64,000 bases of DNA, taken from IMG/VR virus record IMGVR_UViG_3300024520_000047, positions 181,875 through 245,874 of that record. One strand, given 5' to 3'. Positions 20,906 through 62,893 of the stretch are shown here, in pieces (the first letter of the stretch is position 1; every line of letters begins with the position of its first letter). The notes under the pieces are model-generated. The model saw only the letters and a program-made list of their open reading frames with translations, was not told the DNA's origin and searched no databases. A program made the translations under genes and the position numbers.

Positions 20906-20906
20906 T

Positions 20907-32307: not shown

Positions 32308-32354
32308 ATTTTACTTTTAATATAAATAGTAAAATACTAATAAAACTTCTGGGA

Positions 32355-32844: not shown

Positions 32845-33117
32845 TTAAACATCTTCATCACCAACATCATACTCTTGTTTAATTGGTGTTTTTGGTGTTT
32901 TATTATCTCCGTTGGGTGAGAATTGTTCTGAAGCGGTAAAACCAAGTCCTACCATTACAATCCACTGCATAGATTCGTAGATGTTTTTAGAAACTTCTAA
33001 ATCAGTAAATAAATCTACGACAAAACCCAACATCATTAAAAGAAAAGCAATAAAAGTAACCACCCTCTTACTAGAGACCTTACCCTCCTTACTTAACATA
33101 TTTTTCCAAAAAGACAT
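32845..33117 (-). CDS. Small two-TM membrane protein (holin-like)
   Basis: Basic N-terminus then two hydrophobic segments (VVTFIAFLLMMLGFVV; MQWIVMVGLGF). Confidence 0.5.
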   Translation of the reverse strand: MSFWKNMLSKEGKVSSKRVVTFIAFLLMMLGFVVDLFTDLEVSKNIYESMQWIVMVGLGFTASEQFSPNGDNKTPKTPIKQEYDVGDEDV

Positions 33118-33848
33118 TAGAGAATAGTTTTATTTAATTCTTTTATTTTTAATAATGAATTTTTAGAAAAATTACCTTCGTTAATTTTATGTTTAGTTTC
33201 TTCTAATTTTAAAGTTAACTTAGAATCTGAAGTTTCTTTAATTAAACTATCTAATTTTGTTATAGCTTCATTAATATTTTCTTGGTATTCTTCATACAAC
33301 TCTTCTTTTCCTTTAGAATATAATTCTTTAAACTTTTTCTTATCACCACTAGAAAGATTATCAAACCGTTCATTAAATTTTCTAGTAGCTACATTTATAA
33401 GTAATGAGTTTGGTACATTAGATTCTTTTAACTGGATAGATGATTTACGTGTTAAATGATTTAGTAATTCTTTCCTGCCTTTAACCATACTATCTATTCG
33501 TTTTACACTTTCGTTAAAAACTAATAAATCTAAATGATTATAAATTTTATTGGTGGTTTCAGTAATATATGGTTTAAATTTACTAATAGTGTTATTTACA
33601 GTATTAGTTTTTAAATTCTTTTTCTTACTTTTTAAAATTTTAATTACTTGTGTGAGATAAGCTTCAGCTAATGATTTATCGTCAAATCTTTTATTTTCAA
33701 CTTGGGAATATAAAATAAAAAATTCTCTACTTTGTTTGTTTTCTTTTAATGCATTCATAAGGGAATGGAATGCGTTCTTAAAAACAGGTTTGTTATTAAA
33801 AGTATTAACTAATACAGTATCTAAATTATTTTTAACTTTACCAAACAT
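33117..33848 (-). CDS. Hypothetical basic helical protein (prohead core region)
   Basis: 243-aa ORF downstream of portal; TATTTAT motif at 33864-33870. Confidence 0.6.
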   Translation of the reverse strand: MFGKVKNNLDTVLVNTFNNKPVFKNAFHSLMNALKENKQSREFFILYSQVENKRFDDKSLAEAYLTQVIKILKSKKKNLKTNTVNNTISKFKPYITETTNKIYNHLDLLVFNESVKRIDSMVKGRKELLNHLTRKSSIQLKESNVPNSLLINVATRKFNERFDNLSSGDKKKFKELYSKGKEELYEEYQENINEAITKLDSLIKETSDSKLTLKLEETKHKINEGNFSKNSLLKIKELNKTIL

Positions 33849-36008: not shown

Positions 36009-37727
36009 TTATTTTAATCCTGTATATAACCATAAATAGTCATTGGGGTCATTTGATTTTGGTGGCAATACATGAGATGTAGCTCTTCCTGGTGTAAAAA
36101 CAGGTTTTCCGTTGTTTTTGGGTAACTTTCTTTCATCCATTGTCCAACTATCAATCATAGCTTTAGCTTGTGCAATATTGTTTTTTAATTGTGTAAAAGA
36201 ATTTTGTGCAACATATAAGGCCATAGACATAGACATAATCAAATCATCATGTTGTCCTCTCATGTGGTCAGGTCTGCCATTAATATATACAAATGTTTTT
36301 AATTCATTAAATAACCTTCTAGAATAAATCTTAAATCCAGTTCTTAATTGTTCCTCTAATGCTTGGACAATTTGAGCTCGTTTACTGTTAAAATTTATGC
36401 CTGGTACTTTGGTATCTGGGTTAAATTTCCACATTTCTGTGGCCTTAATTCCATCGTAATATAAGTCTTTATATCCAAGTTCTATCATTTTACGTGAAGT
36501 GGCTACACCCATTCCTCCAGTAATATCTATCACCACAAAACAACTATATTTGGTGGCCCATTTATGTGCCAAATCAGCGGCAATATCTGGTGGTAATTTT
36601 CCTAAATATTCTACTACTTGTTCTCTCTCATCAAAATCTATTATCTCAAAGCCAGTTGAATCCTCACTATCTCCTCGTGACACATCTATTCCCATTATAT
36701 ACTTATGCCCCACAATGGGTTCTTTCCACACCCACAAACCATTCCCCACCCATTTTTCTATAGGTTCAGTTAATTTTTCTTTTATTTTTTCCGTAGTTTC
36801 TATGGGTATAACGTTATCTCCGGACCCTAAAAACGCACATTCTAATTCCTGTGATATTTTTCTCCTATCAAACTTTAATTTCTTACACATTTCTTCAAAC
36901 CAAAAAGAAAAGGGTTTATATCCGGTTTCTATTAAAGACTCAAAATCCTCTTCTTTTTGATTAGATAATATTTTAATTTCAACATACTCTTCTCTATTTA
37001 AAAGAAAATGAACAATATCTTTAGTTTTTATCCACTGTAAATTTTTACTAAATCTAGGGTCATAATACCAACTCAAAGTACTAATTTGGAAATTATTAAT
37101 TTCTCTAATTGCTTGGTCATACACCTCATAATATATTTGGTCAAATCCGTTTGGTGTAGAGATGACAATAACCTTACCTCCTGTCGCAAGTGAGGCCATA
37201 CAAGCCGCCCATAAATTGGAACCAGCTTCGATATATGCAGCTTCATCAAAAATTAATATGGTTGGTGTATATCCACGTAACGCATCTACCGAGGTGGCAA
37301 CTGCTTTAACCTCTGAACCATTATTTAACTTATAATGTTTTTGTGAATTTTTATCTTTATCAAATCCAGAATTTACCCAATCGGGCCATTGGCGAAGAAA
37401 AGTTTTTATTTTATTTGCCATTTCCGTAGCAGTATCTAATTTATTAGCTAAAATAAGTACTTTTTCTGGACTATCTTCGGATGCAAATTGAAGTTTTTTG
37501 GATATCCAAGCTGAAGTAGCGGTAGAGACACCGGCTTGTCTATATTTGAGAACTATATTATCATCATAATTTTCAAAATCATGAATCATATTTTGTTGTT
37601 CAGGAAATAATTCAAATGGAACGTGTTTATTTTGGGTATTGTCGTATGTTTCTAAATAAGTTTTTAAGGCATAGTAGGTATCCTTATGGCATTTCACATA
37701 TTCTTGTATGAGTTCTTGTCTAGTCAT
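36009..37727 (-). CDS. gp17: Terminase large subunit (T4 gp17-like)
   Basis: LKYRQAGVST (Walker A), LIFDEAA (Walker B), ISTPNG, QELECAF, GIDVSRG, HDDLIMS. Confidence 0.95.
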   Translation of the reverse strand: MTRQELIQEYVKCHKDTYYALKTYLETYDNTQNKHVPFELFPEQQNMIHDFENYDDNIVLKYRQAGVSTATSAWISKKLQFASEDSPEKVLILANKLDTATEMANKIKTFLRQWPDWVNSGFDKDKNSQKHYKLNNGSEVKAVATSVDALRGYTPTILIFDEAAYIEAGSNLWAACMASLATGGKVIVISTPNGFDQIYYEVYDQAIREINNFQISTLSWYYDPRFSKNLQWIKTKDIVHFLLNREEYVEIKILSNQKEEDFESLIETGYKPFSFWFEEMCKKLKFDRRKISQELECAFLGSGDNVIPIETTEKIKEKLTEPIEKWVGNGLWVWKEPIVGHKYIMGIDVSRGDSEDSTGFEIIDFDEREQVVEYLGKLPPDIAADLAHKWATKYSCFVVIDITGGMGVATSRKMIELGYKDLYYDGIKATEMWKFNPDTKVPGINFNSKRAQIVQALEEQLRTGFKIYSRRLFNELKTFVYINGRPDHMRGQHDDLIMSMSMALYVAQNSFTQLKNNIAQAKAMIDSWTMDERKLPKNNGKPVFTPGRATSHVLPPKSNDPNDYLWLYTGLK

Positions 37728-37769
37728 CTCTTTATAATAAATAGTGAAAAGACTTAAATGATTCTAATG

Positions 37770-39158
37770 TTAGGATTGTCTTCTTAGGAAAGCTAATTCT
37801 TCTTGGGTTAGAGACGCCATTCCACTTTTACCTATTTTATCTAGTATAACGTCAACACTCATTTCTTCTTCAGATTCTTCTTGTGGGATGTCTAACGACC
37901 CTAAAACATCACCACCTTCAGGTTCTATAGTAGCAACTCCTTCGTCCCCTCCTTCATCATCATAATCTGTAGGTAAAGATTCTTCATAATCTTCTTTAGA
38001 TATTTGGTTAATAATTTCTTGGGTAATTCTTTGTAATTCTTCCTTACCTTCATCATTACCAGCTAAAATATTTTTAGTAAGTCTAAACATATCTTTCGCA
38101 TCCATATTAGCAAACTCACTAAATAGATAATTTTGTATTTCAGTTTTATCGTCTTGCATTAAATCCATAGGATAAGCCTCCCTGAATTTTTCCCATATAA
38201 TTGGCCCTAACCTTAAATCCCACACCTCAGCTGTTAGAGTATCTTCAGCGTCCATGACCCGTTGTGCTTGGTTGGGGTCATCTGGTAGACCTTGAGTGGC
38301 TAGTATTTCCATAACACCTTTTATTAATTCATGTACCAAAACTGGAAAAGTAATGCCTCGTGCAATGATGGTTGGTGGGTCCGTGTCTGGGTCTATCTCT
38401 TCTTTTCCTGCCATGCTTTCTCCACTTTCCGCCATCATCATGGTAGTTTGGTCTGGCATTATCCAATATACCAAATCATTTATAGACATCATAACACCGT
38501 ATAAATTAATAAGATTTGGGTCTATATTATTTAATTCCTCTTCTACCATATGAAAAAGATAATGCCCTTTTTTGGAAGCTCCTTGAATTAATTGGTTTAA
38601 AAACCTTCTTTTTTGTTTTTCAATATCAAAATCTTCAAATTCTTCCATCGCTTCTTCTTCCCCTTCTTCACTAGGTGGCTCTTGTTGCATTCCCTCCATA
38701 TCTATCTCACCCATCCCAACTATTTTCGCATCAAATTGAAGAGCGTCATCGGGAATGGCCATCTCCTCTTTTACTATTTTAACTGCTAATTCTTCTAATT
38801 CTTCTTTATGGGCAGCTTCAATTCTAAATATTTCTTGGACTGATTGCATTAACATCTGTTGTAATTGCATCATACTTTGGGGGTTTAATTGCTCAATTCC
38901 AGTATAACGTTTTACATTGTCAATTACTTGTTTAAACCTATCGGAAGCAACTAATTCTTCGAATGTGCTTGGTATGCCCTCTTCGGGAACTTTAGGGTAC
39001 GCTTGAGAACCCGCACCAGGAAATTCCCCACTTTCTATTTTTGATTGTATACTGGGATGCATTCTTTCTGGGCCCTCATAACTGATAGGTGCTTCATATA
39101 AGTTAGTCTTAATTTTTTCTATTTGGGATTTACTATACTCTTTTACTTTTTTACGCAT
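37770..39158 (-). CDS. Conserved-looking hypothetical morphogenesis protein
   Basis: 462-aa acidic ORF directly upstream of terminase. Confidence 0.65.
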   Translation of the reverse strand: MRKKVKEYSKSQIEKIKTNLYEAPISYEGPERMHPSIQSKIESGEFPGAGSQAYPKVPEEGIPSTFEELVASDRFKQVIDNVKRYTGIEQLNPQSMMQLQQMLMQSVQEIFRIEAAHKEELEELAVKIVKEEMAIPDDALQFDAKIVGMGEIDMEGMQQEPPSEEGEEEAMEEFEDFDIEKQKRRFLNQLIQGASKKGHYLFHMVEEELNNIDPNLINLYGVMMSINDLVYWIMPDQTTMMMAESGESMAGKEEIDPDTDPPTIIARGITFPVLVHELIKGVMEILATQGLPDDPNQAQRVMDAEDTLTAEVWDLRLGPIIWEKFREAYPMDLMQDDKTEIQNYLFSEFANMDAKDMFRLTKNILAGNDEGKEELQRITQEIINQISKEDYEESLPTDYDDEGGDEGVATIEPEGGDVLGSLDIPQEESEEEMSVDVILDKIGKSGMASLTQEELAFLRRQS

Positions 39159-43861: not shown

Positions 43862-45727
43862 TTATTTTACTTCTTCATATTCTACATCTGTAGTTTCAGG
43901 GTCATCTTCAGGTGGTGGTGTTGTGTCACCTTCAGTTTGTTCGTATAACTTACTAGAAATAGTTTGCCATTTGGAATTAAGGTCGTCCATATTAACTTTA
44001 ATTTCATCTAAATCTTCATTTTTGTGAGATTCCCTTAACTTATTAACTGATTCTTGGAGTAACTGTTTATCGTCGTCATTTAATTTTTCATCAAACTCAG
44101 TAATTTGTCTTTCCGTTTGAAAAATCATGGAATCCGCCTCATTTAGTTTATTGATTTTTTCTAACTTTTCTGAATCCTCTTTAGAGTTTTTCTCAGCTTC
44201 CATTTTCATTTTATTAATTTCTTCCTCATTGAGACTATTACCAGATTCGATTCTAATTTTTTGTTCTTTATTAGTTCCTTTATCTTTAGCACTAACACTT
44301 ATAATACCATTTGCGTCAATATCAAAAGTGACCTCAATTTGGGGAATACCTCTTTGTGCAGGTGGAATATCAGTTAATTGAAAATTACCTAATTTTCTAT
44401 TATCCATAGCCATTGGCCTTTCTCCTTGTAGTACATGAATATCTACTGCGGGTTGATTATCTATAGCTGTAGAAAATACTTGGGATTTACTCGTTGGGAT
44501 TGTAGTGTTTGCATCTATAAGTTTAGTCATAACACCCCCCATAGTCTCAATACCTAATGAAAGTGGTGTTACATCTAAAAGTAATACGTCATTAACATCT
44601 CCCGTAAGAACACCCCCTTGTATTGCAGCACCCATAGCTACAACTTCATCTGGATTTACACCTTTAAATGGTTTCTTTTTAAAAAATTTCTCAACAGATT
44701 TTTGTATAGCTGGAATTCTGGTAGACCCACCAACTAAAATAACCTCATCAATGTCTCCAATAGTTAAACCACTATCTTTAAGTGCTTTTTTACATGGGAC
44801 CATTGTTTTCGTCACTAATTTATCAATCATAGATTCGAACTTAGCTGTAGTTAGTTTTTTAACCAAGTGCTGGGGTCCTGTACTATTAGCACTTAAATAT
44901 GGTAAATTGATATCTGTGGAATTTGAAGACGACAATTCTATTTTAGCTTTTTCAGCCGTATCTTTCAATCTTTGTAAAGCGATAGCGTCTTTACTTACAT
45001 CTATTCCAGTATCTGATTTAAATTCATTAATTAACCAATCAATTATAATTTCATCAAAATTATCTCCCCCAAGATGTGTGTCTCCATTAGTAGAGAGTAC
45101 TTCAAATACACCACCACCTATTTCAAGAATAGAAACATCAAATGTTCCACCACCCAAATCGTAAACCACAACTTTTTTGTCTTGATTTTCATCTAAACCA
45201 TAAGCTAATGCCGCTGCGGTAGGTTCGTTTATAATACGTAAAACATTTAACCCAGCAATTTCACCAGCTTCTTTAGTAGCGTTTCTTTGGGAATCATTAA
45301 AATAAGCGGGTACTGTAATAACAGCATCCGTTACCTTAGTTCCTAAATACTCCTCTGCCGTTTTTTTCAAATTTTGTAAAACTATAGCTGAAATTTCTTG
45401 TGGTATATATGACTTTCCATCCACACTAATTTTAATACTATCATTAGTGCTTTTTTCTATTTTATATGGAATTTTACTTATTTCTTTTTTTATTTCACTG
45501 AATTTACTTCCAATGAATCTTTTTACCGAATAAATGGTATTTTCTGGATTAGTTACTGATTGTCTTTTTGCCGAGTCACCAATTACTCGTTCATTGCTTT
45601 TAAAAGCAACAATAGAAGGTGTTGTTCTTTTACCTTCTAAATTTACTATGACTTCAGGTGTACCACCTTCAATTACTGAAACGCATGAATTTGTGGTTCC
45701 TAAGTCAATCCCTATTACTTTTGACAT
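43862..45727 (-). CDS. dnaK: Hsp70 chaperone DnaK
   Basis: [42 protein letters not shown]; C-terminus DVEYEEVK. Confidence 0.98.
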
Positions 45728-45791: not shown

Positions 45792-45814
45792 TAAGTATAC
45801 CGTTTAATTATTTA

Positions 45815-45848
45815 TGACATACTGTCACCATATACTGACATATTGTCA
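45815..45848. promoter_or_regulatory. Tandem palindromic operator-like sites between divergent dnaK and clpC
   Basis: TGACA-TAC-TGTCA (45815-45827) and TGACA-TAT-TGTCA (45836-45848), 21 bp apart. Confidence 0.65.
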
Positions 45849-45897
45849 CTACTTGATTTTAAAAGGTATTAATGTATTATTTATAATAAAAAATGTT

Positions 45898-47949
45898 ATG
45901 ATAGAACCGACAGGAAGTTTTGCAGAATTTGAAAAGGGTAAACCCCAAAATTTACCTAAAAAAGAATCACTTTCATCGAAAAGTGGAACACCAGTACTAG
46001 ATAATTTTTCAAGAGATTTGATAAAATATGCGGAAGAAGGAAAATTAGACCCCGTGGTTGGGAGAGAAAAAGAAATTAATAGAATAGCCCAAATTTTATC
46101 ACGAAGAAAAAAAAATAATCCAGTATTAATAGGTGAACCAGGGTGTGGAAAAACCGCACTAGTAGAAGGGTTGGCTATGAAAATAAATGAAGGTAAATGT
46201 CCTCGTAATTTATTAGATAAAAGAATTGTGGGATTAGACCTAACATCCATCGTAGCTGGTACCAAATATAGGGGTCAGTTTGAAGAAAGAATGAAAGCTA
46301 TAATTGATGAATTAGTAGAACATGAAGAAATTATAATTTTTATTGATGAGATTCATACCGTCGTTGGAACCGGAAATGCTTCTGGTTCATTGGACGCCGC
46401 CAACATATTTAAACCCGCATTAGCACGGGGGGAGGTACAATGTATTGGAGCAACCACCATAAATGAATATAGAGAAAATATTGAAAAGGATGGTGCTCTA
46501 GAAAGAAGGTTTCAAAAAATAATAGTCGAACCCACAACTGTAGAAGAAACATTACAAATACTTAAAAATTTAAAAGAACGTTATGAAGAACACCATAAAG
46601 TTAATTATAGTGATGAGTCTTTAGAAGCTTGTGTGTTATTATCTGAAAGATATTTGACTCACAGAGAATTTCCAGATAAAGCTATAGATATTATGGATGA
46701 AGTGGGAGCTAAAGTACAAGTAGAATTAGAATACCCTAAAGAAATTGAGGATTTAAGACGAATACTTAGTGATTTAAAAGAAGAAAAGGTAGAGGTGGTA
46801 AAATCACAAAAATATGAAAAAGCCGCGGAATTAAGAGATAAGGAACGCACAGTTTTAGGTACTCTTGAAGAAAAAAAATTGGCGTGGGAAATGGAATTAG
46901 AAGATAGTCGTAAACCAGTAACGGAAGATGATATATATGATGTAGTTTCCCAAATAACAAAGATACCCATATCTAGATTAGACACTAATGAAACAAAAAC
47001 ATTACTGAGTTTAGAGAGCTCTCTTCAAAAAATTGTAATAGGTCAAAATGAAGCTGTCAAGAAAGTTGCAAGAGCCATCAGGCGTAATAGGGTTGGGATT
47101 AGAGATAATAAAAAACCAATTGGTTCTTTCATGTTTTTAGGTTCCACGGGTGTTGGTAAAACTCACTTAGCTAAAGCGATTGCACGTGAGGTGTTCGGTA
47201 ATGAAGATTCTTTAATACGGTTAGATATGTCAGAATATAAAGAAAAATTCAATTCAACAAGATTGATTGGTTCACCACCTGGATATGTTGGTTATAATGA
47301 AGGGGGTCAACTAACTGAAGCTGTTCGCAAAAAACCCTATTCGGTAATATTGTTAGATGAAATAGAAAAAGCTCATTCCGATATTTATGACCTATTATTA
47401 CAAATATTTGATGAAGGGCATATAACTGATAGTTTAGGGAGAGTCATTAATTTTAAAAATACCCTTATCATTATGACCTCTAATGTGGGAGCTAAACAAA
47501 TGGGTGAATTTTCAAACCCTTTAGGGTTCACAACGAAAGATTCTGAATCAAGAACAGAGGAAGCGGTATCACAAATATTGAAAAAAGCACTAAAAAATAC
47601 CTTTAAGCCAGAATTTCTAAATAGGGTAGAACATAATATAATATTTAAAAGTTTAGAAAAAAAATCTATTAGTAAAATAGTAAGGTTGGAACTGAATCAC
47701 TTACAAGAAAGATTAAAAGAAAAAAAATACCACATGACTTTTGATAAAAAGGTAACTGATTTTATTGTAAAAGAAGGGTATGACGATAAATTCGGTGCAA
47801 GACCAATAAAAAGAGCAATTCAAAATAAGTTAGAAGATTTTATTTCTGAAGAAATATTAAAAGGAAATGTCGTGGAACACAATACCTACACTATGAGAAT
47901 TAATAAAGATAATGAAATTACTATAAACGAAGAAAGTGATAATGAGTAG
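45898..47949 (+). CDS. clpC: ClpC-type AAA+ unfoldase lacking the N-terminal Clp_N domain
   Basis: Two Walker A motifs ([16 protein letters not shown]), UVR coiled coil ([10 protein letters not shown]), ClpP-binding LGF loop; start moved from 45814 to 45898 as the extra 28 codons cover the operator. Confidence 0.88.
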
Positions 47950-47953: not shown

Positions 47954-50341
47954 TTAGGCAATAACTGCTCCATATGAACCAGTAACTATCCAACCAGCAT
48001 CTGCATCCCAAAGTAAATCAATCGAATCTCCCGCATCTGTTAGTGTAAAACTACTATATGGGCTAGTCCACGTATTAATGGTCATGGAACCAGTAAGTGA
48101 ATCGTCATACACATAAATAGTCAATCTTTGTCCCTGACTACCATTAGGTAAAGACCCCGGAGCCGGGGACGAACCTATTTGTGCTATTCTCCAAATAGAT
48201 TTTTTACTTATAGAGGGTGAAACATCGGCATCTGTAGTTACTATCCCTGTTTTATGTATTTGAGCTTCTGCGATTAAAGTATCACCTATGTAAGTAGTAC
48301 TTAATGTAGTTACCCCTGTGCCCGTTAAATCACCATCAACAACAGCTTCAGGGCCTATTGTAACGGGTGAACAACCAGTTATGGTAGACACGTATAATGT
48401 TCCACCAAACTCACATAAATCTACATTGGGCATATAAACTGTATCGTCGGCATTTCCTGTAATGCCAAACCCACCAAGTACTGCACTTCTATCTCCATTG
48501 ACTATGGAGTTAAAAGAATGTGCAAATGAAGTTAAACCTGAAGCTGTGGAACCACTACCCCCCGCGTGGGAACCTGAACCAGCCGCTACAGTTTTAATAT
48601 TTTGAGCATGAGACGCGTCTCCTGACGCTATGGGCCCAATATCGGTTGGTCCTGGGATGCCTATCTCAATATTTGGTCCTCCTTCTGCATGTGCCCACTT
48701 ACCACTAGCAATTGTATTATGTCCTTGAGCGTGAGAACCATAATTACCACTTGCAATCGTATAACCACCTTCAGCGTGAGAACCTGTACCTGAGGCTAGA
48801 GTATTATATCCTTCAGCGTGACCTACTGCCTCTGTTGTTGCAGAGGTTTGGTATCCCTCAACGTGTGAATAATCAGCGTCTGCTGTAATAATTGTCTGAT
48901 ATCCTTCACCATGTGAATAATTACCTATAACTGTAGTGTAAAATCCTTCCGCGTGAGAATAATCACCATGAGCTTTTGTTCCTCTTCCTTCCGAGTGTGC
49001 TGTAACTCCAGTTGCTTCTGTTTGGAATCCTTGAGCGTGACAATAATATTTTGCTCCACTGCCCGCTAATGTCCCATATCCTTCTGCGTGAGACATATGA
49101 GTCATAGCAGATGTTTGGGCCCCTTCAGCGTGAGACCCAATACCTAAAGCATACCCACCAATATAGAGACTAGCCCCAGGAAGTATATAACCACCTTCAG
49201 CGTGAGAACAAGCTCCTATAGCTAGTGACCCATATCCTTCTGCGTGAGAAACTTGTCCACTAGCTAAGGTAAAACCACCTTCTGCGTGAGCACCCATTGT
49301 AGTTGCTGAAGTAGGTGCTATTGTAGGTAAGTCTCCAGTTTTTATTGAGCCACCTTCAGCGTGTGAAGCAGTACCACTTGCGAGATTCCCCCACCCTTCA
49401 GCGTGAGAATAGTTTTCTATTGCTCTTGTATAAGACCCTTCAGCATGGGACGACAGTCCACTAGAAATTGTAGTGTGTCCTTCAGCGTGTGAAGCTATAC
49501 CATACGCTTTAGTATCTATGCCTTCAGCGTGTGAACCATAACCTATCGCTGTCGTATCTTTACCTTCAGCGTGAGATGTGTCTCCAGTTGCCCACGAACT
49601 GTCTCCCTCCGCATGAGAATAGTTCCCTTCAGCTTGTGTACTTATACCTTCCGCATGTGAACTATTACCATATGCTTGAGTGTCTGTACCTTCAGCGTGT
49701 GAACCCTGTCCTGTTGCTATAACACCAGTTTTCCACCCATAACCTTCCGCGTGAGCACCTCTACCGATAGCTATATTAGTCGCCAACCCACCATCACTGT
49801 ACCCCTCAACGTGTGAACCATAACCTATCGCTGTCGTATCTTTACCTTCAGCATGAGATGAAGTTCCCGTCGCCCAAGTGTTTTCGCCTTTAGCGTGAGA
49901 ATAGTTCCCTTCAGCTAATGTGGTACTTCCCCACGCTATAGAATTAATGCCTGTTGCGGATGAAGTAATATGTTGGATAGGACTATGTTCTGTAACAGCA
50001 TCTAAACACGCGTATCTATTATTTATATATAAATTAGTTATACAACTACCACTTCCACCACTAAATACAGTATCTGCGGGGTCTAATAGACCAAACATTA
50101 TCGTATCTCCCGAAATAAAGGTTGTAATTCCGCTGGTTCCTTGAAGTCGTCTAAAATTTAATGCCCCATCATTAGGGTTAGCTGTCTTACTCACATAGAG
50201 ACCTATACCACCAGAACCTAGATTATTTCCAATGGTATTATCTATTTTTTGACTTAAAATACTAAGATTACCATCTAACTCACCATGAGTTAATGCGTTA
50301 CTTTGGCTTAATCTTAAATAAAATGGAATTGGTAATGGCAT
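47954..50341 (-). CDS. Tail fibre/adhesin with ~30 SHAEG beta-roll repeats
   Basis: 14-aa xxTxAxGxxSHAEG repeats (YadA-head-like); N-terminal LTHGELDGN; TATTTAT at 50359-50365. Confidence 0.75.
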   Translation of the reverse strand: MPLPIPFYLRLSQSNALTHGELDGNLSILSQKIDNTIGNNLGSGGIGLYVSKTANPNDGALNFRRLQGTSGITTFISGDTIMFGLLDPADTVFSGGSGSCITNLYINNRYACLDAVTEHSPIQHITSSATGINSIAWGSTTLAEGNYSHAKGENTWATGTSSHAEGKDTTAIGYGSHVEGYSDGGLATNIAIGRGAHAEGYGWKTGVIATGQGSHAEGTDTQAYGNSSHAEGISTQAEGNYSHAEGDSSWATGDTSHAEGKDTTAIGYGSHAEGIDTKAYGIASHAEGHTTISSGLSSHAEGSYTRAIENYSHAEGWGNLASGTASHAEGGSIKTGDLPTIAPTSATTMGAHAEGGFTLASGQVSHAEGYGSLAIGACSHAEGGYILPGASLYIGGYALGIGSHAEGAQTSAMTHMSHAEGYGTLAGSGAKYYCHAQGFQTEATGVTAHSEGRGTKAHGDYSHAEGFYTTVIGNYSHGEGYQTIITADADYSHVEGYQTSATTEAVGHAEGYNTLASGTGSHAEGGYTIASGNYGSHAQGHNTIASGKWAHAEGGPNIEIGIPGPTDIGPIASGDASHAQNIKTVAAGSGSHAGGSGSTASGLTSFAHSFNSIVNGDRSAVLGGFGITGNADDTVYMPNVDLCEFGGTLYVSTITGCSPVTIGPEAVVDGDLTGTGVTTLSTTYIGDTLIAEAQIHKTGIVTTDADVSPSISKKSIWRIAQIGSSPAPGSLPNGSQGQRLTIYVYDDSLTGSMTINTWTSPYSSFTLTDAGDSIDLLWDADAGWIVTGSYGAVIA

Positions 50342-50388
50342 ATCTACTTATTTACTATATAAATATCGCCAGTATAAAAAAGAGAAGT

Positions 50389-51210
50389 TTAAAAGAGTAA
50401 TTGGGAATAATCTTTTTCTTGGTGTTTAAATGTATGTCTAGTATTCCCCAGCTTTTTAAGAATATTTTTTCCTAGTAAAATTGCATTACTAACATCTTCT
50501 ACTACAACATATTCATTTTTTGTGTGGTATCTATAATAACCAGTTGCAAAATTTAAACATGGAAAATCAAAATTTTTCTTTAACATCATTGTGTCGGTAT
50601 ATGGATGATATAACCATTTAATATACCCGTGATTTAATATAATATCCTTAACTGATTCAAAAAACAAACTTTTTTCTTCATACAGTTGGACACCCATTAA
50701 AGTTTTACTCATTGTATCATTTTCTGTAGAGTCAAATTGTATTGCGTAGCCCACATTTTTAAAAAACTCTGGGTCTGCTTGTTTTGAACCGTGACATCCA
50801 GTTTCTTCTGCAACGGGAAAGAAAACTTTACACGTGTCTACTTCTCGAAGAATTTCCATACATGTAAACACCCCAGCTTTATCGTCTCCACCAATACCTG
50901 TTGGTTCTCCAGTTTCTTTTTCATAAGCTTTTAAAGCAAATTTAGGTTCATTTTGTGCATTTAACCTATATTCCTCCTCTATAACCATATCAACTTTTGG
51001 GTGAACAGTATCTAAGTGAGCAACCAAGCAAGGATAAATCTCACTCTGGCCTTTGGTAATATAAAGACACCCCAAGTCGTCTTGATAAAAGGACACACCA
51101 TTTATTTGTTGTAACTCATTTATCAAAAATTCAATTAGGTCGTCTTCCTCCCAAGTATAGGTCGGAACGGCTAACAAATTTTTTAATCGTTGTAATTGTT
51201 TATTTTCCAT
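50389..51210 (-). CDS. M20/M28/M42-type zinc metallopeptidase
   Basis: VAHLDTVH, GGDDKAG, AEETGCHGS metal-ligand motifs. Confidence 0.8.
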   Translation of the reverse strand: MENKQLQRLKNLLAVPTYTWEEDDLIEFLINELQQINGVSFYQDDLGCLYITKGQSEIYPCLVAHLDTVHPKVDMVIEEEYRLNAQNEPKFALKAYEKETGEPTGIGGDDKAGVFTCMEILREVDTCKVFFPVAEETGCHGSKQADPEFFKNVGYAIQFDSTENDTMSKTLMGVQLYEEKSLFFESVKDIILNHGYIKWLYHPYTDTMMLKKNFDFPCLNFATGYYRYHTKNEYVVVEDVSNAILLGKNILKKLGNTRHTFKHQEKDYSQLLF

Positions 51211-51442: not shown

Positions 51443-51516
51443 GCTCCCGTAGCTCAACTGGATAGAGCAACAGCCTTCTAAGCTGTAGGTTATAGGTTCG
51501 AGTCCTATTGGGAGTA
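51443..51516 (+). tRNA. trnR: tRNA-Arg (UCU)
   Basis: Full cloverleaf: GCTCCCG/TGGGAGT acceptor, ACAGC-CTTCTAA-GCTGT anticodon arm, ATAGG-TTCGAGT-CCTAT T arm; CCA not encoded. Confidence 0.95.
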
Positions 51517-51599
51517 CGTAAAAAATTTTGTAATATTCTTTGTATTGTCAAGTATTTATATTACATTTATAATTAGTTCTTTGAAAATATTTAAAATAT

Positions 51600-52026: not shown

Positions 52027-52137
52027 AAGTGGGTACCTGAGACGGACGCTTCGTAGCCTGTAATGGATAGAATGGGTAAGACCATTTAGGGTATTAATCT
52101 CCATTGAGACCCGCGTTCTTGGAGAACCCACTTTTTT
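52027..52137 (+). ncRNA. Putative structured RNA downstream of tmRNA
   Basis: Closing helix AAGTGGGT/ACCCACTT plus nested helices AATGGA/TCCATT, AATGG/CCATT, ACGG/CTGT, then T-run. Confidence 0.4.
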
Positions 52138-52981
52138 ATTTTCCTAAATTTTGGGTGAATTTACCCATATATTTTTGTAGTAAGTCACTCATGATGCCTC
52201 CACCATCTGACTTACTCTGTTGGTATGAAGCCGCGGTATCTGTTGGTGGTTCCTCAACCTTTTCACCGTACTTCACTTTTTCTTTTCCCTCTTTTTCTTT
52301 ATCATCAAGTACGCCCTGTACCTCATCTTTCTTTTGTTTTAATTTACCACATAAAACCTCTTTTACTTTTCCTTCTATTTCTTGATATATAGCACTATTG
52401 TCCCCTATATCAGTTAAACTATTACGTAATACCTGTTCAAAAGTACCGTCAAGCCCTATAGTAGATTCACCTAATTTAAAAGCTCCATATTCTATAATTC
52501 CTTTTGTTAGAAATGGTGCTAAAAAGTTACAATCAAGTAATTTGGGGATGTCCCATATTGGTACGTTTCCTAATGCAATCCCTACAAATTTTCCTAACTC
52601 TCCTGTTATTCCAAAAGTCCCTAATAACCACCTCCATAACTTTTCTCTTACGGTACCCCATAAAGAACCCAAAATACCTTGATTCTGGGACATCGTGAAC
52701 TCCTGTTCTGACAAATATTTTTTATTATGTTTTAAAGAATAAGAAATTTCATCTAATGTAAATCCCCTACTTGTAAGACGATGCATATCTCTAACAAAAT
52801 TTTCACATATAACATCAGGTGATTTCCCAATATTTTTACGTTCAAATCGGTCTGCCCAATTAATTAATCTTATGTTTTTGGATTCAGATAACACTGGTTG
52901 TTTGGGTATCGACATTTCAGATTGTGCTACACTCTCAATAAATTCAACTAATTCTGACTCTGTAAATTTAATTTTTGACAT
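52136..52981 (-). CDS. Putative internal head protein with amphipathic/hydrophobic helices
   Basis: N-terminal KIKFTESELVEFI leader, LSE sites, Gly/Trp-rich hydrophobic middle. Confidence 0.65.
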   Translation of the reverse strand: MSKIKFTESELVEFIESVAQSEMSIPKQPVLSESKNIRLINWADRFERKNIGKSPDVICENFVRDMHRLTSRGFTLDEISYSLKHNKKYLSEQEFTMSQNQGILGSLWGTVREKLWRWLLGTFGITGELGKFVGIALGNVPIWDIPKLLDCNFLAPFLTKGIIEYGAFKLGESTIGLDGTFEQVLRNSLTDIGDNSAIYQEIEGKVKEVLCGKLKQKKDEVQGVLDDKEKEGKEKVKYGEKVEEPPTDTAASYQQSKSDGGGIMSDLLQKYMGKFTQNLGK

Positions 52982-52988
52982 TTCTTAA

Positions 52989-55271
52989 TTATTTTTTTCT
53001 ATTTCTTCGTTTATTTTGACGTGCTCTACGTTTTTCTTTTTTGGTTGGTTTTGGGTCTCCTTTTCCCGTCAATCCATATTCAGATTTAACTTTAGAACTT
53101 CCACCCCCAATAAAATTAAAGTCATCATAACAGTGAGATAAGGCTTGATATACATTTTTACCACCTTTTTTAGGTAATAATTCAGCACTATAACTAATTA
53201 AATCCTTACACCCTTCTTTTGTTGGTGCTAATTTAACCTCATCTTCTAATGTCTTCGTAATGTTTTTCATATCTTCTTGGGTCCCTTTAAATTCGGGTAC
53301 TTTAACTTCTTGATTGGAGGAAGCTACGTCCTCTTTAGGTGTGGACATTGCTTTTAACATAAAAGAAGCGGTTTCTGGGCCAATAACTCCGTCAACCTTT
53401 AATCCGTTAGTCGATTGATAATTTTTAACAGCAGTGTGGGTTGAATCATCAAATACGCCGCTTTCATTCATTCTTAAAAATTTCTGTATTCTATTGATTG
53501 ATGTCCCTTTTTGTCCTTTTTTAATTAATCCGTTTCCCGCTGCGGCATCTTCTAATGATGGAGCAGTGGTTGCACTTGGTGTAGATTTTTCTTTCTTTTC
53601 TTTACTACTACTATTGTCATCCCCACTTCTTCTTCTGCTAATTTTATGTCTGTCATCATCAGAGTCATATTTTACAGTATACTTACCTTCACTAACTAAT
53701 TGACTTTCATTTAAAACTTTTCTTAAATCATGAATAGACTCTTCTAATACCTCAAAATCATTAACCCCCATTGCCATAGATATCGCGGCACCTTGTATAA
53801 CACTTGGTTTTCTTTTTGCTGTATTTGGGTTATCCTCCACTAAATCATCTATATATTCATCAGCTGTTCCTTCAGGTCCTTCTATCATATCTAAGGTTTC
53901 ACCTTTTTCATAAACCACACCATTAACCTCTATATCATCACTTAAAGTCATTAAATCACTACCTTCGTCAGCCTTATTAAATATTTTCATTACTTTAGCT
54001 TTATCTTCATCATCTTCTATAACAAATGTTTCACCATCTAAAGTCCTAAAGTATACTTTATCTTCAGAATTTTCAATATATTCAAACATTCCCATATAAT
54101 CTTTACTACCAGCACCAAAAACTATTGCAGTATTAGACGCCCCTGCTGTGTCTACAAAGACATCCACAGTCTGACCACCAAAAAGAGTTTTAAATGTTAT
54201 TCGATAGGCTGGTAATCCTTCTGGTCTTTCAAATAAATCCTTAGACAGGTCTTCCATCTCTTTTTCTAAATCTTCTATAGTATAAATTCTTTTTCCGTTA
54301 ATTATACATAAAGGTTTATCTTGTAATATAGTTAAAATGGGTTGGAAATCTGATTCATTTAATTCGTCACCCAATTCTTCTATTAAAGAACCATATTTTA
54401 AATCATAGATTCCTGTTAAGTGAGAACAATCATATAATGTAGCTACATTTCTAAAGGCATTGTATATACTTTCTTCATCTGTACCCGCACCTTCAGTAGC
54501 ACCAAACGAAATAAAATCCACTAATCCTTTACCGAAATATTTTTCACCACCTTCTGTAGCGTCTTGAATCATGTCAGCTAACCCCGCTAATTGTGCTTCG
54601 CTTTGAAAGGTAAATGGGATTTCTTCAGTTAATCCCTGCTTTTCAGCTTCGTCATATACCGCAGGATTAAAAGCAATTGCTAATATGTCTTCTTGACTTA
54701 GTGTACCACCATTTGCCCATTGTTCCATGGATGCTGCCGCGTCTCCCGGTCCCTTTCCAGACATATTACTAGCTGCCAGATATCCTCCGCCCCCCAATAC
54801 GGTTAAAGCTTTTAACCCTCCTAAAACACGTGCATTTAAAATAGATTTACTTTGGGCGGCAGTTAATGTTTTTGCTCCACCGGGTAATTTTCCTAAACTT
54901 AATCCACCAGAAGCTATTTTACCAACATTCTTGGTCCCTAAACCAGCTTTAGCTAACCCACCTGTTGGTACTTTGGTAATCCCCCGCATAAATTTAGGTA
55001 AAACACGTGCTCCACCTCGTGCAATCCATGGTCCTAATCTTGCTAATCCACCTACAATAGCCCCCCAAAACTCTAGTTGTAATTCCCCATCAATTGGTGG
55101 TGTATCGGTGATAATTTCTTTGTTTTCTTTTATAACTTTAGGTTTTATTCTACTGTCATTGGTATTTCCCAACAATACCTTTTTAGTTTTTGATGGAAAA
55201 TCCTTACTGTAACTCTCCAAATAGACCATTTTTTTTAATTCTTCCTCAAGTGTTTTTTTTGGTTTTTTCAT
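52989..55271 (-). CDS. Multidomain virion protein: Gly-rich membrane helices, annexin repeat, peptidoglycan-binding domain
   Basis: GAGTDEESI...LGDEL annexin repeat; LIKKGQKG...VKNYQSTNGLKVDGVIGPET PG_binding_1 motif. Confidence 0.75.
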   Translation of the reverse strand: MKKPKKTLEEELKKMVYLESYSKDFPSKTKKVLLGNTNDSRIKPKVIKENKEIITDTPPIDGELQLEFWGAIVGGLARLGPWIARGGARVLPKFMRGITKVPTGGLAKAGLGTKNVGKIASGGLSLGKLPGGAKTLTAAQSKSILNARVLGGLKALTVLGGGGYLAASNMSGKGPGDAAASMEQWANGGTLSQEDILAIAFNPAVYDEAEKQGLTEEIPFTFQSEAQLAGLADMIQDATEGGEKYFGKGLVDFISFGATEGAGTDEESIYNAFRNVATLYDCSHLTGIYDLKYGSLIEELGDELNESDFQPILTILQDKPLCIINGKRIYTIEDLEKEMEDLSKDLFERPEGLPAYRITFKTLFGGQTVDVFVDTAGASNTAIVFGAGSKDYMGMFEYIENSEDKVYFRTLDGETFVIEDDEDKAKVMKIFNKADEGSDLMTLSDDIEVNGVVYEKGETLDMIEGPEGTADEYIDDLVEDNPNTAKRKPSVIQGAAISMAMGVNDFEVLEESIHDLRKVLNESQLVSEGKYTVKYDSDDDRHKISRRRSGDDNSSSKEKKEKSTPSATTAPSLEDAAAGNGLIKKGQKGTSINRIQKFLRMNESGVFDDSTHTAVKNYQSTNGLKVDGVIGPETASFMLKAMSTPKEDVASSNQEVKVPEFKGTQEDMKNITKTLEDEVKLAPTKEGCKDLISYSAELLPKKGGKNVYQALSHCYDDFNFIGGGSSKVKSEYGLTGKGDPKPTKKEKRRARQNKRRNRKK

Positions 55272-55314
55272 TATTATTCTTTTTTTTATAAATATATTAT
55301 TTTTTCTTTAAAGT

Positions 55315-56259
55315 TTATTGTCCTTGCATGGCACCAACCATTTCTTCTTGGTCTTTAATATTTAACGAATCAAAAGCTTCCTCACCTTCTTTTGAACCTA
55401 AAAATTCTTTAAATTTACTATTCACATCTCCCTCTGACATGGTGTCTATTGCGGCACTTCCACCCGCAATACCTGTTAACCACCCAATAAATTTAACCCA
55501 TAGTTTAGTTCTATTCAATAATCCCTTACGTTGCATTCTCGTTAAAATACCCCCACTTCTAAATATTCTTATATTTTTTACCCCTTTAGCTGATAATTCC
55601 GCAGCTTCTCTAAAAACTCTACTATACGTTTTTACATCTTTGGAAAATGTCTTTAAAAATGGTACTTTACCTAATTTTGCTGCGGTTTTTGCTAAAAATC
55701 CAGTAACTTTAGAATCTCCCATTGCTCCCAAGACAGCTTTTCCTTCTTTAGTTTTTCCCATATTTTTTGCCACCTTAAGTGCATCACCAGTTTTTAATCC
55801 AGCATTAATTGCTGTTTTATTAACCTTCCCCAATTTCATAATACCAATAAATGGTTTGGCTATTAAATCTCCAACGTAAGGCACAACAGAAATTAAACTT
55901 AACATACCATATAACATATCACCCTGTCTAAAATAAGATACAGCATTAACTGTATCCGCTATTCCGGTTGGGTCTACAATACCAACCACATCTAACATTG
56001 TATTATACCACCTACTTTCTTGTAGTGGGTTTGCCTTTCCTCTACTAATAGAATATGTGTCAGCCCAGTGAGTTACCCCACCAGCGGGATTTGCCGGTCC
56101 TCTTGTTAACCCAGACTCCCATTGTTTAGCTCCTGTTCCACCAGCATCTGAAACACCAGTTTCTACACCAGCACCTTCAGTGCCACCTTCAAGTTCTTGT
56201 TCTTCAAGTGAGGTTCGTATAATAGATATTAGTTCTGTTTCACTGAGAAATACCTTCAT
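55315..56259 (-). CDS. Putative internal head protein with pre-toxin TG-like domain
   Basis: LDVVGIVDPTGIADTVNAVSY...GDMLYGMLSLISVVPYVG; N-terminal KVFLSETELISII leader. Confidence 0.6.
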   Translation of the reverse strand: MKVFLSETELISIIRTSLEEQELEGGTEGAGVETGVSDAGGTGAKQWESGLTRGPANPAGGVTHWADTYSISRGKANPLQESRWYNTMLDVVGIVDPTGIADTVNAVSYFRQGDMLYGMLSLISVVPYVGDLIAKPFIGIMKLGKVNKTAINAGLKTGDALKVAKNMGKTKEGKAVLGAMGDSKVTGFLAKTAAKLGKVPFLKTFSKDVKTYSRVFREAAELSAKGVKNIRIFRSGGILTRMQRKGLLNRTKLWVKFIGWLTGIAGGSAAIDTMSEGDVNSKFKEFLGSKEGEEAFDSLNIKDQEEMVGAMQGQ

Positions 56260-56261
56260 TA

Positions 56262-56561
56262 TTAACCATTCATTTTAACATCAACAGTGACTGTTACACC
56301 GACTTTACCATCATTTGTCTTCCACTTCCATGTTTTCTTTAGCTTATCGTCTTCTAAGGTTTCAGTCATACTTTTATTACGAAGACTAAAAGCTCCTTTA
56401 GTTGCTTCCAAATGACCAACAACATCCTTAAAAGTTTTTTCTGCTGATGGATGTGATTTTGTTGGTGTTGGTTCGTCTTGTTTTTCTTCTTGTTCCTTTA
56501 AAGTCGTTTCTATTACTTTAATTAATTCACTTTCAGTAAGTCTAATTGTTTTATTTTTCAT
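56262..56561 (-). CDS. Small protein with RLTESELIKVI leader
   Basis: 99-aa ORF in operon. Confidence 0.65.
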   Translation of the reverse strand: MKNKTIRLTESELIKVIETTLKEQEEKQDEPTPTKSHPSAEKTFKDVVGHLEATKGAFSLRNKSMTETLEDDKLKKTWKWKTNDGKVGVTVTVDVKMNG

Positions 56562-56878
56562 AATGTTACTTTATCGTTTATCCATTCTTTCAGATATTCC
56601 TTTGATACCTGAGTAATTTTTTTATTTATTGTTGGGGACAAGTAATCTTCCTCATCCGACATCTCACAAACAGCTTCACTTATTAATTCTTTTTGAAATT
56701 TTTCTTTTATAAGACTAATAGAATTATAAACCTTGAAACCGTTATGCTCATATAAAAAATCTAGGTAATTAAAAATTTTTTCACGCAAGGCTTGTTCTGG
56801 TATTGATTCATATCTTTCATTTAAAATATCATTTACAATACTATTTAAATAATAGTTAAGCCTAAATTTTTTACCCAT
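56558..56878 (-). CDS. Hypothetical late protein
   Basis: Start moved from 57052 to 56878 (MGKKFRLNYY): TATTTAT at 56895-56901, and the longer frame overlaps the plus-strand lipoprotein. Confidence 0.6.
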   Translation of the reverse strand: MGKKFRLNYYLNSIVNDILNERYESIPEQALREKIFNYLDFLYEHNGFKVYNSISLIKEKFQKELISEAVCEMSDEEDYLSPTINKKITQVSKEYLKEWINDKVTL

Positions 56879-56901
56879 GACTTTATTTTTATTAATAAAT
56901 A

Positions 56902-56933
56902 TTTGTAAAGGTGCTAATAATTTATTACTTTTG
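56902..56933 (+). promoter_or_regulatory. Bacteroidota sigma-A type promoter
   Basis: TTTG-N20-TACTTTTG. Confidence 0.75.
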
Positions 56934-56960: not shown

Positions 56961-57866
56961 ATGAAAAATATATTAACTACAGTACTTTTAATTATATGTA
57001 TCTTATCATTTAATAGTTGTAAGAAATATGAATTTGATGAGCCGTTGCCCACTATTGAGAATAATGAATGGATATTACAAAGTGGTAGGGTTTACGTGGA
57101 AAATTTAGATAATGGTGAACTTAAATATTATGACCATTTTGGTCCTAATAGAACTACTAGTAATTTAGACATTTTTGGTGGTTCACAGAGTGATATAGAT
57201 AATATTAACATTTCTCAAACCTCTTGGTATTTTTCAGATGGTAATTTTATTTTAGATAACTCGGTTTATTATGGATATACATCTATGGGTAGTGGTATAA
57301 ATGTGCAATATACAATAATTGGAGTGCCACCATTTGGGTCTTCACGTAATATTGGTGTTTTAGAATTAAACGACAATATTCTTACTATTATTGTATATGA
57401 ATCTAATGAATCCCATAATGGGGTTAACTACCATTATTTTTCTACATTAACATTTAAACGTATAGGTACAACGTGTTCTACATGCACTACAGAATCAATA
57501 AATGGTTATACGTATTCTGGTATCGTGGGTACAGTTATAGAAGAACCCACCACTTTAGATGGTACTTCGTGGATAATTACTCGTTATGATGAAGGAATGG
57601 CACCATATTACCCTAATGATACACTAACATTTATAAGTCAGGTGGTTTATACCTTAAATAATACTGGCGGATATACTTATTCCCTATCTAATATCGCTGG
57701 TAACAACATGCATAGTTTAACATTATATGATTGTACCACTTTTGGTGGTAACTATAGTGGTCAATTATCTCTTTCATTTATTGAAGCTGGAGAAATTAAT
57801 AATGTGACTATGACTGGTGTGTTTGGCACAAACGGTACTATCCAAGTGTGGATGGAGAAATTATAA
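56961..57866 (+). CDS. Lipoprotein with two beta-rich (lipocalin-like) domains
   Basis: Signal peptide II ending FNS-C followed by KKYEFDE (K/D/E-rich Bacteroidota lipoprotein export signal). Confidence 0.75.
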   Translation: MKNILTTVLLIICILSFNSCKKYEFDEPLPTIENNEWILQSGRVYVENLDNGELKYYDHFGPNRTTSNLDIFGGSQSDIDNINISQTSWYFSDGNFILDNSVYYGYTSMGSGINVQYTIIGVPPFGSSRNIGVLELNDNILTIIVYESNESHNGVNYHYFSTLTFKRIGTTCSTCTTESINGYTYSGIVGTVIEEPTTLDGTSWIITRYDEGMAPYYPNDTLTFISQVVYTLNNTGGYTYSLSNIAGNNMHSLTLYDCTTFGGNYSGQLSLSFIEAGEINNVTMTGVFGTNGTIQVWMEKL

Positions 57867-61624: not shown

Positions 61625-61675
61625 CTTCTATAAATAGTTATAGACTTATTTAAAAAAATATAGTATCTTATTCAT

Positions 61676-62587: not shown

Positions 62588-62893
62588 TTAAAAATCGTCT
62601 TCGTTAAATGGGTTCATTTGACTTTTAAGTTGGACCATTATCTTAGAATAGTCATTCATGGGACCCACGAAATCATTTCTTACCTTACCTAATTCGTGTT
62701 TCAACCTATCTTGTACCAGTATTCCCTCAACTAATGAAGAAAACACATCCATCGAATCTCTAAATTTCATATAATTTTCGAATAGGGTCTTCATCATGGC
62801 TTCCTCATCCTGTGCTCCTATATTTGGGTCGTCATACCCACCCACCTCATTAAGTAGTTTTTGATATTGTGAATTATTTAATTTAACTTTCAT
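62588..62893 (-). CDS. Hypothetical late protein with KVKLNNSQYQKLLNE leader
   Basis: 101 aa; TATTTAT at 62898-62904. Confidence 0.65.
   Translation of the reverse strand: MKVKLNNSQYQKLLNEVGGYDDPNIGAQDEEAMMKTLFENYMKFRDSMDVFSSLVEGILVQDRLKHELGKVRNDFVGPMNDYSKIMVQLKSQMNPFNEDDF

Follow-up and report, generated by a model that had tools for sequence, protein, structure and literature searches.

An N-terminal helix module common to unrelated genes of a T4-like jumbo phage: a possible capsid-loading propeptide

The gene run at the locus

We analysed a 64,000-nucleotide stretch (the window) of the IMG/VR virus record IMGVR_UViG_3300024520_000047, positions 181,875 to 245,874, the DNA of an uncultured phage with a G+C content of 31%, in which five tightly packed minus-strand genes, E-D-C-B-A, form a block that is syntenic in relatives. 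Three of them, namely A, C, and D, begin with the same short leader (the tag), which is an undescribed and very common N-terminal module, and which we tentatively read as a detachable propeptide that would load its protein into the phage head in the manner of the capsid-targeting sequence (CTS) of T4 internal proteins. Coordinates below are those of the window (aa, amino acids; nt, nucleotides; ORF, open reading frame; Φ, hydrophobic residue; the arrow marks a cut or a putative border).

56558-56878, minus strand: gene E, 106 aa, first of the run; true start at the ATG at 56878
56262-56561, minus strand: gene D, 99 aa; leader, then acidic/polar spacer, then small conserved C-terminal domain
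56493-56561, minus strand: leader of D, aa 1-23, MKNKTIRLTESELIKVIETTLKE; kept in D orthologues
55315-56259, minus strand: gene C, 314 aa; leader, then Gly-rich disordered spacer, then all-alpha core
56200-56259, minus strand: leader of C, aa 1-20, MKVFLSETELISIIRTSLEE; defined by C orthologues and an AlphaFold2 helix
56017-56025, minus strand: LQE79-81 of C, an invariant [LIV]xE right before the all-helical core (WYNTxLDxVGIVDPTG)
52989-55271, minus strand: gene B, 760 aa; another N-terminal motif, a PG_binding_1 domain, and a very basic C-terminal tail
52136-52981, minus strand: gene A, 281 aa
52934-52981, minus strand: leader of A, aa 1-16, MSKIKFTESELVEFIE
52883-52891, minus strand: LSE31-33 of A, a nearly invariant second ΦxE where the confident core starts
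62588-62893, minus strand: 101-aa ORF that may begin with a short variant of the leader, MKVKLNNSQYQKLLNE↓VGGYDDP; its counterpart in relatives is the first 100 aa of a ~470-aa protein

Searches of Pfam, PHROGs, and NCBIfam returned no match for A, C, or D. Gene C has 306 relatives in viral contigs, and a Foldseek search of its model against the PDB gave no match at E<=0.001, which leaves the C core without a known fold relative; an ESM Atlas search with gene D was uninformative. The only real domain call in the run is the PG_binding_1 domain of B (aa 602-638, nt 53358-53468, 8.4e-10), which agrees with the peptidoglycan-binding class of candidate cargo proposed in an initial annotation of this DNA, and it is this domain alone that would point to action at the cell envelope; no catalytic lytic domain was found in B by Pfam, PHROGs, or a PDB sequence search. 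The two other cargo classes proposed there find no comparable backing: 'membrane-active' reduces to moderately hydrophobic Gly-rich segments, one of them in B (peak Kyte-Doolittle hydropathy over 19 residues, 1.61 in C and ~1.3 in A and B), and 'nucleic-acid-binding' reduces to the basic tail of B.

The leader of A, C, and D

We built a hidden Markov model (HMM) from the first 24 columns of the C orthologues only, with the window's own C excluded, and used it to search the whole window in six-frame segments (61,631 aa). Besides C itself, the HMM matched D (independent E-value, iE, 1.5e-6) and A (iE 5.3e-5), each at the extreme N-terminus, with the next match at an iE of 0.68. The claim that the unrelated ORFs at 52136, 55315, and 56262 begin with the same leader is thereby upheld, both within the window and in relatives, where a further profile recovered 72 copies (see below). 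Two weaker versions had also been proposed: that at 2978 found no support, while that at 62588 was not significant with the leader HMM, although its orthologues, which read MKIKLSEEQYKKLMNE↓IGGYDDP, make a short tag variant plausible there. Genes E and B were ruled out as carriers of the A/C/D leader by the HMM and by the N-termini of their orthologues. By the same two comparisons, gene E has neither a leader nor a conserved N-terminal ΦxE; its sequence is enriched in [LI]xE (7 against 2.7 expected, z 3.2). The N-terminus of B, conserved among orthologues as LxEELxKMxYLxGY, differs from the A/C/D leader and resembles, by eye, a recurrent motif of related contigs (FIISEEEKxxIxxLY); a conserved [IL]xE (I-K-E49) follows at residue 49, nt 55125-55133.

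The leader DNA of A, C, and D differs at synonymous sites, which indicates conservation at the protein level and not a recent duplication. The leader is among the best-conserved parts of each family and, in A, it is the best-conserved part, with M1, K3, E8, E10, L11, I15, and E16 invariant in 21 homologues; it is likewise retained among the orthologues of C and D. Its consensus (alignment A5) is M-x-K-K-Φ-x-Φ-T-E-S-[DE]-L-x-x-Φ-Φ-x-x-Φ-Φ-x-E, which would form a short basic strand followed by a capped amphipathic helix of ~16 residues that ends in ΦΦxE. With hydrophobic residues on both sides, T-E-S-E-L makes a textbook capping box and hydrophobic staple of a helix.

AlphaFold2 modelled C with (i) a helix at residues 7-24, (ii) a disordered stretch at 23-81, and (iii) a confident fold from residue 81. 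In the model of A, a lone helix spans residues 8-22, with residues 1-6 and 19-26 at a predicted local distance difference test score (pLDDT) of <50; 10-residue blocks up to residue 30 average ~50, and block means are ~80 from the helix that starts at residue 33. The tag helix is predicted to be detached from the core in both A and C, and the core to start at the second ΦxE. The tag is matched by neither Pfam nor NCBIfam, and the motif strings that we searched for were not found in the literature.

Head protease, capsid site, and links to head genes

The head module lies on the same strand as the E-D-C-B-A run. Its gp23-type, gp20-type, and gp21/S77 genes, together with a contig of up to 293 kb for gene C, support the earlier identification of a T4-like jumbo phage. 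Features of the head module, and the promoter-like motifs near the run, are as follows.

27974-29770, minus strand: gp23-type major capsid protein (Pfam/PHROG)
29591-29602, minus strand: LINE57-60↓ATT in the major capsid protein, a predicted maturation cleavage site
29811-31493, minus strand: acidic protein, read as the scaffold from its position between the protease and capsid genes; no family hit
31597-32307, minus strand: gp21-type prohead protease, Peptidase_S77 (Pfam PF03420, 3.5e-23; PHROG 207, 1.5e-43)
33875-35683, minus strand: gp20-type portal, part of a classical T4-type head module
36009-37727, minus strand: large terminase (TerL), part of the same classical module
37770-39158, minus strand: head-module protein, 462 aa; variable N-terminal peptides always ending in [LIV]xE↓ before APIDYxGPERMxP
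55288-55295, minus strand: second copy of the promoter-like motif, 16 nt upstream of B
56895-56902, minus strand: promoter-like motif [ACT]TATTTAT[AT], 16 nt upstream of E

The protease matches the T4 gp21 structure 5JBL (E 3.6e-14) and has ELNHP and ISSRG at the positions of ELNAP and VASRG in the 5JBL chain. We take the His of ELNHP and the Ser of ISSRG to be the catalytic residues, substituted by Ala in the crystallised 5JBL protein. The capsid site named in the initial annotation is present: LINE60↓ATT aligns with the known T4 gp23 site FLTE65↓AEIGG, with the Glu invariant, and of 80 related capsid proteins at least 71 retain LINE↓A. The capsid protein is predicted, by this alignment, to be cut at a site homologous to E65↓A66 of T4. 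Enrichment in [LI]xE was seen in the scaffold (z 3.5) and in a 243-aa protein encoded between the portal and the protease (33117-33848, z 3.6).

In two relatives (L139 and L143), two tag-type genes, which start MKKIKLTEADLAKIIQRIVNE... and MKIIITEEQLKK..., lie between the protease and the scaffold/capsid genes. In more distant head modules, the gene right after the protease starts MKKSELKxIIKxxVxE (a weak HMM match).

The motif [ACT]TATTTAT[AT] lies 4-41 nt upstream of 15 starts in the window, against 1.3 expected. These include the starts of the scaffold, protease, TerL, tail fibre, E, and B, and none in the sugar-metabolism block; other sites are at 32322-32329, 37737-37744, 50359-50366, and 61630-61637. 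That E and B have this motif in common with head and tail genes fits a co-regulation with structural genes. The T4 late promoter itself, TATAAATA, was tried and is not enriched in the window (23 against 18 expected); the enriched motif, which on the coding strand is TATTTAT[AT], corresponds to this T4 late box in reverse complement.

Candidate ΦxE sites and core boundaries

The (L/I)xE sites that had been proposed at the leader ends, with a distinct domain after them, are present in all three genes: FIE16 and LSE33 in A, LEE20 and LQE81 in C, and VIE18 and LKE23 in D. Among the top database matches, 219 of 227 tag copies end in [LIVMF]xE. The tag ending, ΦΦ(N/K)E, resembles the LINE↓A of the capsid protein, and the T4 sites read FLTE↓A, FIAE↓A, and TITE↓A.

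At the core border of C, E81 does not vary among 25 diverse homologues, despite a hypervariable N-terminal region, and one C homologue is reduced to MKKHNINE↓AWYNT before the core. A variable N-terminal peptide with a conserved ΦxE at the core border recurs in A and B, in a DHH-like family (a label that rests on a weak Pfam DHH match of 22 bits), and in the 462-aa head-module family. In the DHH-like family, the N-terminus is always M[KR][KR]LΦxE↓SG[IL]R, and one member has a full leader before the same E. The DHH-like genes of freshwater jumbo phages adjoin the C homologue (L035 10978-12384, L078 10917-12326, and L059 10956-12518). The protein of 37770-39158 is depleted in internal [LI]xE, with 3 against 10 expected (z -2.6).

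Occurrence and cargo of the tag in phages

With an iterated profile, 85 loci around C homologues yielded 72 significant tag copies, all beside a start codon and on at least eight unrelated families. A 31-position profile searched against 1.84 billion representative proteins gave 5,513 matches at E<=0.001, counted as clusters at 50% identity. We also scanned viral and bacterial DNA with a strict degenerate DNA pattern, which returned, among viral contigs, at least 143 matches in 120 contigs, many of them of 130-335 kb; among the viral matches listed, a Met stands 2-7 residues upstream in 138 of 143, and 140 have ΦxE as their ending. A window-like capsid gene occurs together with tag genes on contigs 3300044633_000899 (296 kb) and 3300042893_000165, and L174, on a 130-kb contig, has at least seven tag genes within 20 kb. 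The tag-carrying phages are for the most part uncultured phages of 130-335 kb, probably with Bacteroidota hosts.

L174 also holds, at 10391-13473 and beside several strong tag genes, nine tandem ~100-aa paralogues that start MK[YF][LI]ITESQ[LI]DK[VI]IFKYLDNQDF. In this array the motif is continuous with a folded domain and has no ΦxE after it.

Most cargo proteins are without a known domain. Among the others is an Fe/Mn superoxide dismutase (SOD) with a tag-type 20-residue extension, MKIRITESQYNLILE↓GKEDT, whose Pfam domain begins at residue 21 (L001 2957-3604, as well as L008, L010, and L012); further cargo comprises PG_binding_1 proteins and the DHH-like family. The window is without a tagged SOD gene, and of the neighbouring ~470-aa protein only the first 100 aa have a counterpart in it, the ORF at 62588-62893. 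In a Pfam scan of tag-bearing proteins, P0088 had no match and four families were found in 6 of 106 others; NCBIfam gave nothing for P0109, the tag-bearing relative scanned. The PHROG matches of P0124 to 'virion structural protein' and 'DNA ejection protein' fall at residues 459-527, off the tag, in a stretch that we infer to be a Peptidase_S74-like domain (Pfam, three members).

A possible capsid-loading propeptide and its alternatives

The reading with the best support, which we put at somewhat short of an even chance, is that A, C, and D carry a detachable T4-CTS-like N-terminal propeptide, by which they would be loaded into the head and which a gp21-type protease would remove; gene B probably has the same role through its different N-terminal motif. 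This CTS reading draws on (i) the N-terminal and modular nature of the tag, (ii) the ΦxE sites, (iii) the protease and the capsid site, and (iv) the tag genes in head operons. The tag module would dock a newly made protein onto the scaffold or core of the assembling prohead, with a flexible spacer after the docking helix. The gp21-type protease, active only inside proheads, would then cut after the ΦΦxE at the helix end and, alternatively or additionally, after the conserved ΦxE that immediately precedes the core domain. In their mature form, A, C, D, and probably B would remain in the head with the DNA and could exit with it at infection. Docking, cleavage, head residence, and ejection are steps that we infer for the tagged proteins, and the injected effector set, or 'ejectosome', of the initial annotation would be an extension of the same reasoning.

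Several observations weigh against the CTS reading. Neither [LI]xE nor ΦΦxE is depleted in the cargo parts (p 0.43 and 0.24, respectively), and the P1' residue after the helix is mostly Q, E, D, or N, unlike the Ala of the capsid site. Among the top database matches, 81 of 227 tag copies are internal, often in proteins of the type leader-cargo-leader-cargo, so that the module is not tied to the N-terminus. When C, one leader, and a two-leader protein were compared by tblastn with 50,697 GenBank phages, no match to the leader was found, at a sensitivity limited by the short query, and no tag is present in the 50-kb structural region of Flavobacterium phage immuto. The tag genes of freshwater relatives lie among metabolic and not structural genes. 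There is no alignable homology with the T4 CTS, only a T-x-x-E-Φ-I resemblance to MKTYQEFIAE. Finally, the tag is not confined to phages with a matching protease: 17 of 31 bacterial copies have a convergent IS1595-family transposase within 1 kb and, judged by sequence, passenger genes of transposons in host-type chromosomes (Prevotellaceae) begin with the tag, ΦxE ending included. A prohead protease is not expected in those chromosomes, so the terminal E may be structural. What stands of the 'modular address tag' put forward in the initial annotation is therefore its modularity, with at least eight unrelated families as carriers; its specificity for the capsid does not follow, given the IS1595 passengers and the internal repeats.

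These bacterial copies came from a scan of one genome per bacterial species with the DNA pattern, which gave 40 matches against ~6.5 expected. Some 31 of the 40 are true N-terminal tags (MNKKLIRLTESDLHRIVKESVNRVLNE...), mostly in Prevotellaceae/Bacteroidales, among them the isolates Segatella bryantii DSM 11371 and Prevotella sp. MA2016. Between IS1595 loci, only the transposase and a ~100-bp block (the upstream region and the leader) align, and the cargo is hypervariable. Inverted repeats surround the transposase and the tagged passenger ORF, the 3' ends of which abut.

L262 733-2126; L265 422-2988; L285 645-3313; L278 6932-7298; L286 4808-6823: IS1595 units with a tagged passenger ORF, from Prevotellaceae chromosomes and metagenome-assembled genomes

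The main rival to the CTS reading is a general N-terminal module of Bacteroidota mobile elements, unrelated to capsids, in which ΦxE would be a part of the helix and not a protease site; we regard it as a serious possibility, if a rather doubtful one. In a first form, a detachable amphipathic helix would either attach small proteins of diverse kinds to one shared partner in the cell or bring them into oligomers; in a second, the promoter, start, and first ~25 codons would make up a portable 5' cassette whose cargo is swapped by recombination. In its favour are the identical module MNKKLIRLTESDLHRIVKESVNRVLNE in Prevotellaceae/Bacteroidales genomes, isolates included, the convergent transposase beside 17 of the 31 copies, and the conserved ~100-bp block and transposase with non-conserved cargo within enclosing inverted repeats, as well as the TESEL capping box with its hydrophobic staple, the internal copies, the tandem MKYLITESQ... 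paralogues without a following ΦxE, and the position of tag genes among metabolic genes in freshwater relatives. The rival leaves unexplained (i) the conserved core-border ΦxE behind N-terminal peptides of variable length, (ii) the tag genes within head operons, and (iii) a twofold excess of ΦxE upstream of internal copies, where 38 of the 81 have one just upstream against a background of 24%. Processing of a polyprotein-like kind would fit this last observation. Further, the phage copies are conserved at the protein level with differing codons, and no common partner is known.

A chaperone-recruitment tag is a less likely explanation, and an improbable one. KKΦΦRL would here be an Hsp70/DnaK site, by which the protein is handed over to the phage Hsp70 and ClpB-like ATPase or to host DnaK and kept unfolded or assembly-competent. 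DnaK prefers a hydrophobic core flanked by basic residues and is present in both the phage and the bacterial contexts, and the Hsp70 and ClpB-like genes lie between the head module and the A-E run and are conserved in relatives. All of this evidence is circumstantial; DnaK does not favour the acidic core, TESEL, and the ΦxE sites would be unexplained. It is scarcely credible that A, C, and D are merely diverged duplicates that keep a similar N-terminus by paralogy or chance and without a separate function: the genes are adjacent and co-oriented, and helical N-termini starting MKK are common in AT-rich genomes, but the HMM E-values lie far beyond chance, the tag is the best-conserved part of each family, and its presence on many unrelated families, in 5,513 clusters, and in the genomes of distant hosts largely refutes this.

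The CTS reading can be taken further in two ways. In a milder form, which we think possible but would not presume, the tag defines a predictable 'ejectome' (SOD, DHH-like, and PG-binding proteins) across uncultured phages. It is very unlikely that the tag is a portable capsid address code common to a large Bacteroidota jumbo-phage clade and to the IS1595-type transposons of its hosts, under which the tagged proteins of chromosomes and insertion sequences would be loaded into the heads of infecting phages; this could amount to a 'Trojan-horse' defence that poisons progeny, or to proteins of the element travelling with phage DNA.

As a capsid-loading propeptide, if it is one, the tag would represent the first CTS family to be recognised outside T-even phages, and would be far more widespread than the T-even CTS. 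A head-packaged and possibly injected protein set could then be read straight from a metagenomic genome; among its members would be enzymes with a possible action on the host within the first seconds of infection, and the tag would offer an engineering handle for packaging foreign proteins. Should the tag have no role as a capsid signal, it remains a very common N-terminal module, as yet undescribed, that phages and IS1595 elements share.

Phage relatives, host, and neighbouring genes

The closest deposited relatives by capsid protein, at ~41% identity, are an uncultured 'huge phage' and Flavobacterium phage immuto; IMG/VR holds hundreds of capsid proteins that are 63-69% identical, and the contigs of some of them measure 130-320 kb. 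Bacteroidetes phages that form a similar group, with sizes of up to 331 kb and bS21 phages among them, are on record (PMC9723584). A gene that is bS21-like by eye (L169 12159-12440), located between the protease and scaffold genes of a distant marine relative, recalls the phages of that study. Two N-termini in the window are of Bacteroidota type, which indicates a Bacteroidota host: the protein of 56961-57866, divergent from gene E, has a lipoprotein-like N-terminus ending in ...SFNSC, as in Bacteroidota-style secretion, and that of 27433-27927 has a Bacteroidota-style signal peptide ending in ...SYAQ.

Between the head module and the tail fibre lie an Hsp70/DnaK-like gene (43862-45727) and a divergently oriented gene for a ClpB-like double AAA+ ATPase (45814-47949), both of which relatives keep at 75-80% identity. 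The 795-aa protein of 47954-50341, taken as the tail fibre, has dozens of SHAEG/YSHAEG repeats; this stretch is locally G+C-rich (44.7% against ~31%), and its homologues have a faint YadA_head match. An M42/M20-like peptidase gene (50389-51210; PHROG 4191, 2e-34) and a tRNA-Arg(TCT) gene (51443-51517) lie between the tail fibre and gene A.

At the other end of the window, a large plus-strand island (4078-21605) holds apparent sugar-nucleotide and glycosyltransferase genes, judged by N-terminal sequences alone, several of which begin with NAD-binding GxxGxxG motifs; this island has no tag genes and no TATTTAT motif. A 206-aa ORF at 3350-3970 has the top [LI]xE enrichment of the window (9 against 2.7 expected, z 4.4).

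Comparison with known systems

In T4, 10 residues at the start of IPIII are enough for head loading, and gp21 removes them; the internal proteins of T-even phages are diverse, with the CTS alone in common (PMC9026906, PMC3012670, PMC5694885). T4 IPII and IPIII start MKTYQEFIAE↓A, and IPI starts MKTFKEF...TITE↓A (NC_000866). Like the T4 CTS of IPI, IPII, IPIII, and Alt, the tag is a short N-terminal peptide that ends in ΦΦxE on otherwise unrelated proteins. As in T4, there is a homologous S77 protease and a homologous capsid protein site (here from sequence), and the cargo may include enzymes, as with Alt. The cargo genes are scattered or hyperplastic and lie beside a tRNA gene; in T4, ipI adjoins the tRNA cluster, with ipII and ipIII ~5 kb away (NC_000866). 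Unlike the T4 CTS, of which it has twice the length, the tag precedes a long variable spacer and a further conserved site; it is also far more numerous per genome, and occurs internally and on IS1595 passengers. The tag would thus work like the T4 CTS, yet by sequence it falls outside that family.

The propeptides that inner-body/ejection proteins carry in the giant phages phiKZ, 201phi2-1, and SPN3US are mostly >100 residues long with an S/A/G-x-E motif, and the SPN3US paralogues gp53 and gp54 have identical N-termini (PMC5694885). The window resembles these phages in being that of a jumbo phage with a gp21-related protease, theirs cutting after Glu; in them, many proteins of the head carry N-terminal propeptides with several cleavage sites each. 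Unlike in the phiKZ type, P3 and P4 here are hydrophobic, as in T4, the predicted propeptides are of 16-81 aa, and the head genes are classical T4 genes (scaffold, gp23, and gp20).

The cargo-loading peptides of encapsulins are comparable by analogy only, as short detachable helices that bring diverse cargo to the interior of an HK97-fold shell; they differ in being usually C-terminal, in not being removed by a protease, in serving a bacterial nanocompartment, and in their unrelated sequence. IS1595 insertion sequences of Prevotellaceae carry the same N-terminal module on a passenger ORF; near A-E, the window has no transposase, and the phage copies of this module are conserved at the protein level only.

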